A stretch of DNA of 64,000 nt from positions 1 to 64,000 of the IMG/VR virus record IMGVR_UViG_3300027541_000009; one strand, written 5' to 3'. A program made the translations under genes and the position numbers. A model generated the notes under the pieces. That model saw only the letters and a program-made list of their open reading frames with translations, was not told where the DNA came from and did no database searches. Shown piece by piece: positions 1,785 through 30,217 of this stretch (its first letter is position 1; every line of letters begins with the position of its first letter).

Positions 1785-2136
1785 ACCTGAACTGGGACAA
1801 ATTTTATTTGGAAATCCCACAGAGGAATATAGTGTTCCTCGTGAGAAATGGATGGGTGGTCCATTCCAAATCTTGATTGATGCGATTACAGAAAAGACAG
1901 GAGAAAAAGATTATGGATACACTCCACATTTCTCCAACGATTTCTTTATCATCCGTCCTTATTATTGGGGTGATGAAGAAGATGAAATGGATAAACCTAA
2001 CTTTGAAATCCCAAGTGAAAACTTCCGTTTGACTTGGTATAAGTATCCTTTTAGGAGTTCTTATGCGAGTGAGAAACTTACTCCAAAGAGGTGGAACGAC
2101 CTGATTCAAAAATGTATTAAGAGTTTGGAAGAATGA
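1777..2136 (+). CDS. hypothetical protein
   Basis: Overlapping ORF in operon. Confidence 0.75.
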   Translation: MTEPELGQILFGNPTEEYSVPREKWMGGPFQILIDAITEKTGEKDYGYTPHFSNDFFIIRPYYWGDEEDEMDKPNFEIPSENFRLTWYKYPFRSSYASEKLTPKRWNDLIQKCIKSLEE

Positions 2137-4993: not shown

Positions 4994-5172
4994 CTGACGA
5001 ACAAATTGATACAATGCTCCAAATGCATAGGTATCTTATTCATTGTGAGATGAGTTATTTGGTTGATAAAACATTGAACCAAGATGACCGTGCTGCCGAA
5101 CTTCAAGAAAAAGTAAATAACGAAGAATGGACTAAATTTGCTCTATGGTTGAAGAAGATTAGAGATGAATAA
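4990..5172 (+). CDS. hypothetical protein
   Basis: Start moved to ATG 4990 (ATGA overlap). Confidence 0.7.
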   Translation: MTDEQIDTMLQMHRYLIHCEMSYLVDKTLNQDDRAAELQEKVNNEEWTKFALWLKKIRDE

Positions 5173-5977
5173 TGAAATGCCGTGGGTTAATCTCACACAA
5201 GAAGAAGTAGAAGAACTCCGCAGAAAAAAACACGAATTAACGGAATATGGAAAACAGAGGTTGAGAGAACTTATCTACAAACAGGATATGAAAAAAATGG
5301 AAGATGCTGCAAAAGACCTTGTTCTTGAAAATCTTACGCACGAAGAAATGCTTTCTCTTGCTGAACAAAGAGAAGCAGAAAACAAAGCACTTGAAGCATT
5401 AGACAAACTTTATGATGAAAATGGTGAAGGTATGAAACAACTTGCTGAAGATGAAAGAATCAAAGTGATTCAAACCGCTTGTGGTGCGATTGATAAGTAT
5501 TCTGATGCTCTCAAAGCACTTGCTGAAACAGAAAAGGTAGAGTTGCGAGTAGAGTTGGAAGCAAAGAAAAAAGAAAACTTTCAAGAACTTGCTGATGCTT
5601 GTATGAAAGATTATGAACAAAAGTATGGTCGTGATGTATTTCCAGTGGATGAGCATTGGGTGTATATGGTTTCCGAATATTTCGGCACAGGGGAGGGTCA
5701 AACTGTGTGTGTTATGATGACACAGGCAAATCCTGGTCATCCTGAAGATTTTGAAAACTCTACCAATAAGTATGTTGCTTGTACTACACAGCAATATCGT
5801 GCTGTGAGAGCATTCCATGAGCAGTTTGGCACTTGGTATCTTCATGGTCTCAGATTTCTCACTAAAGAAGATTTCTTTAGTGAATATTCATACTACATTC
5901 CTCCAGCAATGATGAAACTTCTCAATAGGAGTTGCTTCAAAGACTTCTACACCCGTGTTCATTACAATTTCTCATAA
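5165..5977 (+). CDS. hypothetical protein, coiled-coil N-terminal half
   Basis: 270-aa ORF. Confidence 0.75.
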   Translation: MNNEMPWVNLTQEEVEELRRKKHELTEYGKQRLRELIYKQDMKKMEDAAKDLVLENLTHEEMLSLAEQREAENKALEALDKLYDENGEGMKQLAEDERIKVIQTACGAIDKYSDALKALAETEKVELRVELEAKKKENFQELADACMKDYEQKYGRDVFPVDEHWVYMVSEYFGTGEGQTVCVMMTQANPGHPEDFENSTNKYVACTTQQYRAVRAFHEQFGTWYLHGLRFLTKEDFFSEYSYYIPPAMMKLLNRSCFKDFYTRVHYNFS

Positions 5978-6273: not shown

Positions 6274-6455
6274 GTAGATTTCAAGAAAATCCTGATGAGA
6301 TTGTGCTTCAAGACATTCAAATGTTTCATCTTGAAAGTATGAATGAACGCACCCTTTGGATTGGTGTTTATACTGAAGATGACAAAATCTATCACTTAAA
6401 CATTTCTGCTGATGGAGATAAACTACGTTATTATTGGAGCAATGAAACAGTTTAG
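6270..6455 (+). CDS. hypothetical protein
   Basis: ATGA overlap. Confidence 0.7.
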   Translation: MSRFQENPDEIVLQDIQMFHLESMNERTLWIGVYTEDDKIYHLNISADGDKLRYYWSNETV

Positions 6456-7372: not shown

Positions 7373-7405
7373 ACCACATCAGTTTTTCTGATGTGGTAAT
7401 TTTTT
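7373..7405 (+). terminator. hairpin/terminator after Ubl gene
   Basis: ACCACATCAG-TTTTT-CTGATGTGGT followed by AA and a T run. Confidence 0.7.
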
Positions 7406-7426
7406 ATTATTCTACACACTAAATCA

Positions 7427-8512
7427 ATGACTGCTGTTACTGAAGAAATTCAAGATCAAACTGTCCAACAACAAGAAACTCCTAGTGTTCTTCGCACTCG
7501 TAGAGATGGTGTGTGGGAAATTTATGATGGTCCTTGGGGTTCTTATCTACGGGTAACTGATGATCCCGAAGCAAATGTAGAAATTACCGAAGATCATCTT
7601 AAAAAGTTTGAACTGAAAAAAGATATTCACCGCATCCCTGCAGAACTTTGGGCACGTTGGGTTAAACTTTGTTTCTATTTTGTAGACAAAGTTCCCAACT
7701 CTGTGGAAGTTTCTATTCGTATTCTTCGCAGTCAGGAAGATCCTAGTCAATATCGTTTTCTCGTTCCTCGTCAGAAAGTCTCTGGTGCTTCTGTGCGAGT
7801 GGAAAACTTTGATGAGGCAGTTGATATTGAGACTGGTGAAGAGATCGAACAGTATCCCCCTTCTGGTTGGATTCCTGTAGGATCTTCTCACTCTCACAAT
7901 ACCATGCAAGCATTCTTCTCAGGTATTGATGACAAATATGAACTTGATGATCCTGGTATTCACCTAGTCATCGGTTCAGTTGACACCAAAAACATGAAGT
8001 ATACTATTGCATCTTCTGTTGTTGGAAGTCGTCGTCGGTTTGAGTTGCCTTATGATAATCTCGTAGATGCAACTCCCGTGGAAGGTGTAAATTTCCATCC
8101 TAAAGTGATTGATTATGTTGATTGGTCAACACCTACTGTAGTTACTCCTAAGAAGTCTGGTGGTTCTTTCCTTAAAGTTCCTACCCAATGGACTAAAAAG
8201 GTATCGGATACTCCCAAAAATAACTTCAACAGTATGGAGTATTGGGGTTGGAATGATTCCGATGATTATAATGATCCTTTTTATTGGAATACTTCTTATT
8301 CTAATAAAGATGATGATATGGGTTTAGATTCAGTTAAGATCTGGCACATTACAGATACACTTAATGATTTTATGAATCAGAATAAAACTGAAGTCCACAA
8401 ACTCAATAATCTTAGGGAAGAACTCTATGACTTTTTGAGTGACTTGGAAGTTCTGTTGGATTCTCAAATCGAACAGAACTTCGAAGAACTTATTGAAAGT
8501 AACGTATATTGA
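7427..8512 (+). CDS. JAB/JAMM metallopeptidase (deubiquitinase-like), PRTRC protein A-like
   Basis: Exact H-x-H-x7-S-x2-D motif (HSHNTMQAFFSGID) with an upstream Glu (SVEVS). Confidence 0.88.
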   Translation: MTAVTEEIQDQTVQQQETPSVLRTRRDGVWEIYDGPWGSYLRVTDDPEANVEITEDHLKKFELKKDIHRIPAELWARWVKLCFYFVDKVPNSVEVSIRILRSQEDPSQYRFLVPRQKVSGASVRVENFDEAVDIETGEEIEQYPPSGWIPVGSSHSHNTMQAFFSGIDDKYELDDPGIHLVIGSVDTKNMKYTIASSVVGSRRRFELPYDNLVDATPVEGVNFHPKVIDYVDWSTPTVVTPKKSGGSFLKVPTQWTKKVSDTPKNNFNSMEYWGWNDSDDYNDPFYWNTSYSNKDDDMGLDSVKIWHITDTLNDFMNQNKTEVHKLNNLREELYDFLSDLEVLLDSQIEQNFEELIESNVY

Positions 8513-11618: not shown

Positions 11619-11680
11619 TAACTAACTTTCTAGGAAACTAGATTTTTTAAATACTACACTTCATAGTGTAGTATTATTAT

Positions 11681-11753
11681 GGGCAAGTAGCATAATGGAT
11701 AATGCATCAACCTTCTAAGTTGCCGATTGTAGGTTCGAGTCCTACCTTGCCTG
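11681..11753 (+). tRNA. tRNA-Arg(UCU)
   Basis: GGGCAAG/CTTGCCT acceptor stem, CT-TCT-AA loop, GTAGG-TTCGAGT-CCTAC T arm; no encoded CCA. Confidence 0.92.
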
Positions 11754-11780
11754 TTAGATTCTAATTAGAATCTAAATTAT

Positions 11781-11868
11781 GCGAGTGAGACTTGGTAGTC
11801 AGAGAGGTCTTATAAACCTTTTCCGCCAGATTAGCGGCTTTGAGATGGTTCGAATCCATCCACTCGTA
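11781..11868 (+). tRNA. tRNA with UAU anticodon (Ile) and long variable arm
   Basis: GCGAGTG/CACTCGT acceptor stem, AGGT-CTTATAA-ACCT, CCGC/GCGG variable stem, GATGG-TTCGAAT-CCATC. Confidence 0.8.
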
Positions 11869-11890
11869 TTACTCTAAACTACACTTAGAG

Positions 11891-11898
11891 TATAAATA
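11891..11898 (+). promoter_or_regulatory. T4-type late promoter
   Basis: TATAAATA upstream of HNH gene. Confidence 0.75.
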
Positions 11899-11922
11899 AA
11901 TGTGTAGAGTGATCTAACTCCT

Positions 11923-12339
11923 ATGATAGGAAAATGTAAAAACTGCGAAAAAAACTTTAAGTATTCTCCATCACAAGGAAAAGGAATTTATTGTTCAAAT
12001 AAATGCCAACAAAAAGATTACTACAAACAAAATATTACCGATTGGTTATCCAAAAAAATAACTGGAAAGGTTAGAGATGGAAGACCAAGTGATTTTGTTA
12101 GAAGGTATATGCTTGAAGAAGCAGGATACAAATGTTCTGAATGTGGTTGGGGAAAAGCAAATCCAACAAATGGTATTATCTATCTTGAAATAGACCACAT
12201 AGATGGTTCAAGAAAAAATGGGTATAGGGAAAATCTTAGAGTATTATGTCCCAATTGCCATACCTTAACTAATACCTACAAAACACTAAACAAAAATATA
12301 GGGTATCACAAATCAAGAAAACAACAATTAAATGATTAA
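11923..12339 (+). CDS. HNH homing endonuclease inside the tRNA cluster
   Basis: CSECGW...LEIDHIDG...N..ENLRVLCPNCH; N-terminal CxxC...YCSxxC. Confidence 0.88.
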   Translation: MIGKCKNCEKNFKYSPSQGKGIYCSNKCQQKDYYKQNITDWLSKKITGKVRDGRPSDFVRRYMLEEAGYKCSECGWGKANPTNGIIYLEIDHIDGSRKNGYRENLRVLCPNCHTLTNTYKTLNKNIGYHKSRKQQLND

Positions 12340-12342
12340 CTT

Positions 12343-12415
12343 GCTGGTTTAGCTATCTGGTGAAAGCACCCGACTCATAATCGGTATCAGGTGGGTTCGA
12401 TCCCCTCAACCAGCA
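12343..12415 (+). tRNA. tRNA with CAU anticodon (elongator Met or Ile2)
   Basis: GCTGGTT/AACCAGC acceptor stem, CT-CAT-AA loop, TTCGA T loop; identity not resolvable by eye. Confidence 0.88.
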
Positions 12416-12432
12416 CTTAATTTTTACTTACA

Positions 12433-28793: not shown

Positions 28794-29048
28794 ATGACAT
28801 ACAAACAATTCCTTGATCTAGCAACACAATATCATCAACAATATCCAGAGATGAGGAAAGGTCAAGCATTTATGAATTGTCTTTATCAAGTCAATCCATA
28901 CTTGCATGATTTAATCTCCACTACTGAGTTTGATTGTTTTTATGATAACTCACGTTATTGGAACTTTCTTCAAATCGTAGAAAAAAACATTACTGATCAA
29001 GTAGAAAACAAACGTTTTAACTTACCAAAAGTAATTAAATTGTATTGA
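28794..29048 (+). CDS. hypothetical phage protein (RxGQA motif)
   Basis: EMRKGQAFMNCL...DCFYD. Confidence 0.65.
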   Translation: MTYKQFLDLATQYHQQYPEMRKGQAFMNCLYQVNPYLHDLISTTEFDCFYDNSRYWNFLQIVEKNITDQVENKRFNLPKVIKLY

Positions 29049-29148
29049 TTATTACTTGTTTAAAAATGTATTAAAAAATATATTGTTGTGTTTATATTAG
29101 TCTGATAAGATGTTGTATAAATACTCTGTTTTATTTGCCTCTGTACTG

Positions 29149-29202
29149 CCTTATAGACTCTATCTATTCCCTTATAGACTCTATCTATTCCCTTATAGAC
29201 TC
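29149..29202. repeat. 21-bp tandem repeat (about 2.6 copies)
   Basis: CCTTATAGACTCTATCTATTC at 29149 and 29170, partial at 29191. Confidence 0.95.
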
Positions 29203-29254
29203 TTATGAGTACCTCAATTAAATGGTGATATTTATAGTCATCTAAGGCTGCATA

Positions 29255-29283
29255 AGTATAGCACACCTCTAAAAATCTGTCAA
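29255..29283 (-). promoter_or_regulatory. minus-strand sigma70 promoter
   Basis: Reverse complement reads TTGACA-N17-TATACT with TGC extension. Confidence 0.8.
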
Positions 29284-29316
29284 CCCCCCACAAAAACTCT
29301 AAGAACCCAGCAAAAG

Positions 29317-29434
29317 TTTTCCACAGGTTTCGGAGTAAACTCAGTGTTTGCAATGCTTTATAAGAATTGCCCTGTGGAAAACTTTATAAAATCTGTGGAA
29401 AAACCTGTGGAAAACTATGTCAACCTGTGGAAAA
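29317..29434. repeat. cluster of five TTTTCCACA (cyanobacterial DnaA-box consensus) 9-mers
   Basis: TTTTCCACA at 29317; TGTGGAAAA at 29373, 29394, 29406, 29426. Confidence 0.85.
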
Positions 29435-29467
29435 CTATTAGAATCTCAGCATGAGTCTCTGATGTGG

Positions 29468-29525
29468 TGTGCCACTTGTGAAACTGGCACAGTAAATGAG
29501 CACAGACCCCGATCTGTGGTATTAT
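29468..29525 (+). promoter_or_regulatory. early promoter
   Basis: TGTGCCAC-N8-CTGGCACA; TGG-TATTAT. Confidence 0.8.
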
Positions 29526-29577
29526 TAAAGGGTGGAGGGAGTGCCCACCACAAGTTCACAACACTAACTCAAACAAA

Positions 29578-29721
29578 ATGCAAGTTCAACTCTCCCGTGA
29601 TCTGATGCTTGGTATGCTTCGCAAGGGGCAGATTGGTTCTCAGATTCTTGCAATTCTTGATGTAATTACTTCCATGGACCCTGAGACTTCTGAGGATGAG
29701 GAAGTGCCTGCTGCTGCCTGA
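29578..29721 (+). CDS. small protein, MLGMLRKG family (47 aa)
   Basis: Translated by hand: MQVQLSRDLMLGMLRKGQIGSQILAILDVI... Confidence 0.75.
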   Translation: MQVQLSRDLMLGMLRKGQIGSQILAILDVITSMDPETSEDEEVPAAA

Positions 29722-29786: not shown

Positions 29787-30217
29787 TTCGTGGTACAATG
29801 CATCATGAACAGTTCGTCTATGAAGTTCGTTATTAAACAACCTCTGAGACAATGAACTTCGTGGTAATTCTCATACGTGGGGGACTTCGTTATTCTGAAC
29901 TCCCAGAGAGTTACTGAGTTTCATACATTTGCCGCAGTATAATACAAACTGTTCGTCCATTAAGTTTTCTTAATGTATGGACAGTTTTTTATACTATTGA
30001 CAGCACATAGAAGTTCGTGGTATAATCTTAGGGCAATCAGTTCGTTATATGAATTGTAGTTGCTTCGTGATTGTGTTTTTATGATGAAGTTCGTCAGTAT
30101 TTCATACGTGGGGGACTTCGTTATAAAAATCACACAGTATTGTTAATATCTTATACGTGGGGGTGTTGGGTATAAAAATCACTCTTCGTTGTTATACACG
30201 AATAACGAAGTCTTCGT
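29787..30217 (+). repeat. TTCGT array with 23-bp direct repeats
   Basis: 13 TTCGT on + strand; TCATACGTGGGGGACTTCGTTAT at 29871 and 30102. Confidence 0.85.
29997..30026 (+). promoter_or_regulatory. sigma70 promoter in ORF-free region
   Basis: TTGACA-N18-TATAAT with TGG extension. Confidence 0.7.

Follow-up and report, generated by a model that had tools for sequence, protein, structure and literature searches.

A conserved array of host-type DnaA boxes in a non-coding hub of T4-like cyanophages

The locus

Near the middle of a cyanophage genome fragment, a run of small plus-strand genes is interrupted by a 529-bp stretch (29049-29577) with no credible open reading frame (ORF). Within it, the nonamer TTTTCCACA, the published DnaA-box consensus of cyanobacteria, occurs five times in 118 bp (29317-29434), with one copy facing four copies of opposite orientation. 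We analysed this hub in the first 64,000 nt of IMG/VR record IMGVR_UViG_3300027541_000009, referred to here as the window. Only one further copy of the nonamer lies in the window, inside an ORF; shuffled sequences give 1.54 copies per window, and by our own Poisson estimate from that rate the chance of five copies within 118 bp is about 1e-11. The repeated unit is longer than nine bases and reads CCTGTGGAAAAC(T). The features of the hub, and of related hubs mentioned below, are collected in Table 1; comparison loci carry L numbers and sequencing runs carry X numbers.

The window belongs to a T4-like cyanomyovirus (Kyanoviridae). It encodes T4-type baseplate and neck proteins, and its gp6 is 61% identical to that of Synechococcus phages S-SSM7, S-SCSM2R and Sf-FS3. 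G+C content is about 33%, and almost all genes are on the plus strand. A megablast search of the region against 50,697 deposited phage records found no close relative; a more sensitive blastn search found only the box array of phage DSL-LC03 and a microvirus. The same sequence is present in riverine metagenomes and metatranscriptomes. Ten ORFs neighbouring the hub have no informative PHROG match. Among 81 small ORFs of the window, no DnaA DNA-binding domain (PF08299) was found; weak Pfam matches, both below curated confidence, were to Rsd/AlgQ, a sigma-70 regulator (E = 7e-4), and to YacG, a gyrase inhibitor (E = 5e-3). No Rfam family was found in the hub, and the 145 nt after the boxes fold no better than shuffled sequences (z = -1.34).

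Table 1. Features of the hub in the window and of comparison loci
Sequence	Position	Strand	Feature	Observation
Window	11680-12416		Three tRNA genes	Arg-TCT, Ile-TAT (by ARAGORN only), Met-CAT
Window	28794-29048	+	Last ORF (84 aa) of the upstream run of small genes; left boundary of the hub	Only a weak match to PHROG 8466, of unknown function
Window	29027-29086		Easily melted AT-rich tract	Fifth least stable 60-bp window of the 64 kb by nearest-neighbour energy; top 0.03%
Window	29064-29082	+	Conserved AT-rich 19-mer (AAATGTATTAAAAAA-type element)	About 250 bp from box 1, downstream of the leftward promoter
Window	29116-29123	+	TATAAATA, T4-type late-promoter-like motif pointing right	One of only 7 copies in the window
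Window	29149-29203		Perfect 21-bp tandem repeat, 2.6 copies	Tandem Repeats Finder; one copy fewer in contigs of metatranscriptome runs X15 and X16
Window	29229-29236	-	TATAAATA, pointing left
Window	29255-29283	-	Near-consensus sigma-70-type promoter firing leftward, away from the boxes	TTGACA-17-TATACT with TG extension; 11 of 12 matches
Window	29317-29325	+	DnaA box 1 (TTTTCCACA), facing boxes 2-5	The 13-mer AGTTTTCCACAGG is invariant in all six aligned relatives
Window	29326-29372		Conserved 47-bp spacer between the convergent boxes
Window	29373-29434	-	DnaA boxes 2-5, same orientation	Starts 29373, 29394, 29406, 29426; 21/12/20 bp apart
Window	29482-29490; see also L132 and L198		Short motifs recurring in hubs of distant relatives	ACTGGCAC, ATAAGACTC or its complement, and TTCGTTATA
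L132	3978-3986, 4098-4106		Short motifs, as above
L198	3997-4005, 4277-4285		Short motifs, as above
Window	29517-29525	+	Candidate rightward promoter (extended -10, TGgTATTAT) for the downstream genes	Inferred from the sequence
Window	29578-29721	+	First downstream ORF (47 aa); right boundary of the hub	No family match
Window	29997-30026	+	Perfect sigma-70 consensus promoter, 560 bp right of the array	TTGACA-18-TATAAT with TG extension
Window	58779		Sixth copy of TTTTCCACA	Inside an ORF
L124 (same contig as L324, IMGVR_UViG_3300032236_001159)	7400-7507		Orthologous hub; all five boxes read TTCTCCACA	56/21/11/11 layout, AT-rich 19-mer and leftward promoter kept
L197 (P-SSM2)	5110-5320		Array of the palindromic motif CTCG[AT]CGAG
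L323 (Syn1)	6306-6440		Annotated 44-aa hypothetical protein Syn1_073	Overlaps the three-box array; probably not a gene
L059	19-146		Array of TTTTCCACA just upstream of terminase genes	Siphovirus-like contig
L060	5-56		Array of TTTTCCACA just upstream of terminase genes	Siphovirus-like contig
L107	4250-4460		Array of TTTTCCACA just upstream of terminase genes	Siphovirus-like contig
L350 (Microvirus mar31, MZ089777)	1955-2076		11 head-to-tail copies of CCTGTGGAAAA in the non-coding region	One more box-like site upstream

An earlier note, made from the sequence alone, had described the five boxes together with an AT-rich tract, 21-bp tandem repeats and a strong promoter pointing away from the boxes. 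That observation is confirmed: every one of these features is present. Two details require correction. The AT-rich tract, which the note placed next to the boxes, is about 230 bp from the first box. The 21-bp repeats are absent from the five closest relatives aligned and vary in copy number between samples, so they are unlikely to be iterons.

Conservation of the array

The note had named the frequency of the nonamer elsewhere in the genome and its conservation in related phages as tests of its proposal, and we examined both. A first scan of IMG/VR for two boxes within 30 nt returned more than 116 loci, of which about 30 were T4-like cyanophage contigs with the boxes a few kb upstream of gp25 and gp6. 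To avoid selecting on the boxes, we then fetched 80 loci by homology to the neighbouring 248-aa protein; these contained 70 boxes in 855 kb, and about 65 of them sat in groups 1-9 kb upstream of that gene. Nine of 24 loci with at least 4 kb of upstream sequence had an array. A scan for the full layout (box-GG, 40-70 bp, CC-opposed box, then another opposed box) matched 112 IMG/VR stretches. We re-found the layout in 79 loci, of which 74 share proteins with the window and 68 carry the 248-aa gene.

The layout consists of one box facing three or four opposed boxes across a spacer. Of 111 cores, the spacer is 47 bp in 52 and 68-70 bp in 51, two classes that differ by about two helical turns; each class keeps conserved sequence, with shared blocks in the 47-bp class. 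The 21/11-12/20-22 bp spacing of the opposed boxes recurs across related phages. In six aligned relatives overall column identity is 56%, yet the 13-mer around box 1 does not vary.

The array also occurs in two cultured phages. DSL-LC03, the only complete genome examined, has 10 boxes where about 2.2 are expected by chance; seven of them lie in one 457-bp hub within a 606-bp gap, and it is the single such hub of the genome. Syn1 has three boxes 12 bp apart, hidden under an annotated ORF. The array is not universal in the family: P-SSM2 and S-SSM7 have no boxes in the 10 kb upstream of the neighbouring gene. P-SSM2 (L197) and seven other T4-like cyanophage loci (L148, L154, L172, L174, L177, L188 and L194) carry arrays of 5-7 copies of the palindromic motif CTCG[AT]CGAG in the corresponding non-coding region, instead of the DnaA boxes or within about 500 bp of them; L167 and L191 have both kinds.

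In L124 the orthologous hub keeps its layout, but all five boxes carry the same base change, at box position 3 in both orientations. Scans for the variant found no second phage contig in IMG/VR with the TTCTCCACA layout, and no clear host for it. Arrays of TTCTCCACA do occur in bacterial-looking metagenome contigs, so it may be a natural DnaA-box variant; alternatively, the coordinated change could point to a co-evolving binder.

DnaA-box arrays are not limited to T4-like cyanophages. Three GC-rich (57-58%) siphovirus-like contigs (L059, L060 and L107) have 3-6 perfect boxes; L059 and L107 were typed by Pfam (terminase, portal, capsid), and L060 has the same ORF layout as L059. A gut microvirus carries 11 tandem box units; a DnaA-box-dependent priming signal on single-stranded DNA is known for plasmids. 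These arrays hint that phage use of DnaA boxes is wider than assumed.

Resemblance to cyanobacterial chromosomal arrays

Published work gives TTTTCCACA as the DnaA box of cyanobacteria, including marine Synechococcus, with in vitro binding shown for Cyanothece (PMC2275245, PMC4674748). The phage boxes resemble those of cyanobacterial chromosomes beyond the nonamer. Across 160 phage boxes, the flanking bases are biased toward A at -2 (75%), G at -1 (69%), G at +1 (77%) and G at +2 (59%); arrays in cyanobacterial chromosomes show G at -1 (64%), G at +1 (72%) and G at +2 (43%). Across 36 phage loci, adjacent boxes of the same orientation are 11-12 bp apart in 26 of 65 cases and 20-22 bp apart in 24 of 65, that is, one or two helical turns, and the chromosomal arrays show the same 11 and 20-22 bp spacings. 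Of seven chromosomal arrays checked, only one lies directly upstream of dnaN; we therefore refer to them as chromosomal arrays and not as origins.

Promoters, the AT-rich element, and transcription

In 54 of 66 arrays with enough flanking sequence, a near-consensus sigma-70 promoter lies within 400 bp to the left of box 1 and fires leftward, against a background of 0.034 per 400 nt; the most common distance from box 1 is 33-50 bp. A rightward promoter lies to the right in 38 of 66 arrays, most often 46-71 bp away. The leftward promoter faces a strand with no credible gene: the only long minus-strand ORFs in the window and in L132, a distant relative, overlap the repeats and look spurious. The predicted leftward transcript has a conserved 5' leader and runs toward a distal pair of boxes and an AT-rich element. 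In the window the AT-rich tract lies about 160-220 nt downstream of this promoter, and the arrangement recurs in relatives.

The 13-base core of the AT-rich 19-mer has 16 hits in 2.0 Mb of fetched loci. Thirteen lie within 800 bp of a DnaA box, and one more lies beside the variant array of L124; the element is almost exclusive to these hubs. It directly follows the last box in L026, L078 and L097. By contrast, two more distant array-bearing phages (L122 and L128) have no unusually unstable tract within 700 bp. Reading of the sequence beside the boxes, without a validated scoring model, gave no convincing run of DnaA-trio repeats, and spacer positions one turn away from box 2 do not resemble a box.

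RNA evidence comes from assembled contigs without strand information, which do not show transcript direction or ends. In RNA run X17, contig depth is 7.8 up to 29178 and 23.6 over 29174-29371, no contig covers 29372-29548, and depth is 47.9 from 29549 onward; a DNA run is flat across the region. This pattern fits separate transcription units on either side of the array, with a downstream start near the candidate extended -10. Cumulative GC skew rises steadily in DSL-LC03, with no switch at the hub, and does so in the window as well; since nearly all genes are on one strand, this says little either way.

A tentative composite origin

The earlier note proposed that the boxes form either an oriC-like phage origin that recruits host DnaA or a DnaA sink that blocks host chromosome initiation. 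This interpretation is supported in part: the genome is that of a T4-like cyanophage, the nonamer is the cyanobacterial consensus, and the array is under selection, but the choice between origin and sink is not settled. The fixed convergent layout, the flanking promoters and the linked AT-rich element fit an origin or regulatory hub better than a plain sink.

We are fairly confident that the sites are functional and are bound by host DnaA, although this binding is inferred from sequence. The boxes match the host consensus perfectly and share the flanks and phasing of host arrays; no DnaA DNA-binding domain is found among the 81 small ORFs of the window, and no DnaA-like product appears among the features fetched for DSL-LC03. 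As to what bound DnaA would do, our favored but tentative reading, held at less than even confidence, is that the hub is the primary replication origin of the phage, built from host-type and T4-type parts. In this view, host DnaA binds one box on the left and four opposed boxes on the right, one or two helical turns apart, so that the proteins can form an ordered complex across the conserved spacer. The sigma-70 promoter 34 bp left of box 1 would fire away from the array, and its non-coding transcript would run toward the easily melted AT-rich element. Transcription and DnaA together would open the DNA, with the RNA possibly acting as an R-loop primer as at T4 oriF and oriG, and the phage's own helicase loader, helicase and polymerase would then take over. 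Our analysis establishes the sequence features, their conservation, their layout and their resemblance to host chromosomal arrays; that DnaA binds, that the DNA opens here, that an RNA-DNA hybrid primes synthesis and that replication starts here are inferences.

Several considerations favor this reading. The layout is fixed and not merely rich in sites, the promoters are already near consensus and are not overlapped by boxes, so they look used rather than controlled, and a conserved AT-rich element travels with the boxes. A T4-type origin is a promoter plus an unwinding element, and this hub adds host DnaA boxes to that plan. A single theta-type origin has been predicted for the cyanomyovirus Syn9 (PMC2984593). 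On the other side, the AT-rich element is not adjacent to the array in the window and is not found near every array, no clear DnaA trios were seen, some family members lack the array, and the coordinated change in L124 could point to a binder other than the usual host DnaA. In addition, T4-like phages encode their own helicase loader, so a need for DnaA is not obvious.

It is possible, though less likely than not, that a large group of T4-like cyanophages has one oriC-like origin that needs host DnaA, instead of several DnaA-independent R-loop origins as in T4. Phage replication would then be gated by the host's replication-licensing state; in cyanobacteria that state may follow light and the cell cycle, which could help explain why cyanophage replication depends on light, a link that is our speculation. 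T4-like cyanophages are among the most abundant viruses of the ocean's main primary producers, yet for how they start replication the reviewed literature offers only the skew-based prediction for Syn9. The hub provides a concrete, conserved candidate site, present in cultured phages and so open to direct test. If host DnaA is used, it would be an unusual case of a large lytic phage with its own replisome depending on, or interfering with, the host initiator, and would link phage replication to host physiology.

Alternative readings

The strongest rival, which we consider unlikely but not negligible, is that the array is a regulatory site: host DnaA bound between two divergent early promoters would tune their output, so that early phage transcription responds to the state of the host's replication machinery, while replication starts elsewhere. 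The array does sit between divergent near-consensus promoters in most related phages, with box 1 upstream of the -35 of the leftward one and the last box upstream of the rightward one, and contig depth changes at the hub in run X17. DnaA acts as a transcription factor in bacteria and stimulates lambda pR (PMC8477408). However, the promoters have an extended -10 and should be strong without an activator, and the boxes do not overlap the core promoters, so simple repression is unlikely. Nor does this reading explain the linked AT-rich 19-mer, or why the leftward promoter faces a strand with no credible gene.

It is improbable that the sites are bound by something other than host DnaA, such as a phage-encoded DNA-binding protein or another host factor, with the match to the DnaA box being mimicry or coincidence. 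The coordinated change in L124 is as expected if sites and binder co-evolve, conservation extends beyond the nonamer to a 13-mer, some marine phages (pelagiphages) encode the DnaA DNA-binding domain (PMC8477408), and only 64 kb of this phage genome is visible. Against this stand the lack of PF08299 among the small ORFs scanned, the lack of a DnaA-like product among the DSL-LC03 features, the match of flanks and spacings to cyanobacterial arrays, and the occurrence of TTCTCCACA arrays in bacterial-looking contigs.

Least likely is a DnaA sink, in which the multiplying phage genome soaks up host DnaA and stops new rounds of host chromosome replication: five to eight perfect boxes per genome copy, multiplied by phage copy number, would outnumber the 1 to 12 boxes reported for cyanobacterial oriC regions (PMC4674748), arrays also lie upstream of terminase genes in unrelated phage-like contigs, where an origin is less expected, and the microvirus carries 11 units, but a sink needs many sites and no fixed layout, whereas here the convergent 1+3-4 arrangement, two discrete spacer lengths, flanking promoters and AT-rich element are all conserved and box number stays small (3-8).

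Comparison with known systems

Full-text searches found no paper describing DnaA boxes in cyanophages, although an earlier mention in subscription-only literature, which lay outside these searches, cannot be excluded.

The hub shares with bacterial oriC, in particular cyanobacterial oriC upstream of dnaN, an identical box consensus, the same preferred flanking bases, the same one- and two-turn spacing of same-orientation boxes, and an AT-rich element in the same region (PMC4674748). It differs in sitting in a lytic T4-like phage that has its own replisome, with no dnaA or dnaN nearby, with the AT-rich element at a distance in the window, no convincing DnaA-trio and no GC-skew switch. The T4 origins oriF (uvsY) and oriG (gene 34) consist of a promoter plus a downstream unwinding element, primed by an R-loop. 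The hub is similar in having a promoter whose predicted transcript would run into an easily melted AT-rich tract, in a phage of the same broad group; here, however, the promoter is sigma-70-type and not a MotA-dependent middle promoter, the AT-rich tract is not next to it, and T4 origins have no DnaA boxes.

Transcriptional activation of origins, as in lambda pR stimulated by host DnaA (PMC8477408) and in E. coli oriC flanked by the gidA and mioC promoters, likewise combines host DnaA sites with nearby transcription, and promoters firing away from the site would add negative supercoiling between them. Lambda initiates with its own O protein at its own iterons, and no such initiator or iterons are seen here. 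DnaA titration loci, such as E. coli datA and the DnaA-box clusters of B. subtilis, are also clusters of high-affinity boxes outside the host origin; the present array is carried by a virus, with a fixed convergent layout, flanking promoters and an AT-rich partner element. Iteron origins with DnaA boxes (P1 oriR, pSC101, F, RK2) resemble the window in having DnaA boxes, direct repeats of about 21 bp and an AT-rich tract within a few hundred base pairs. An iteron origin is rejected here because the repeats are absent from the five closest relatives aligned and vary in copy number, and because no neighbouring ORF has a Rep-like family match.

Finally, Ori-Finder has been used to propose DnaA boxes as part of the origin in two unrelated lytic phages, Pseudomonas phage vB_PseuGesM_254 (PMC11512268) and phage G (PMC12484599). 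Those are single-genome software predictions; here the array is perfect, host-specific and conserved in layout across 79 confirmed loci.
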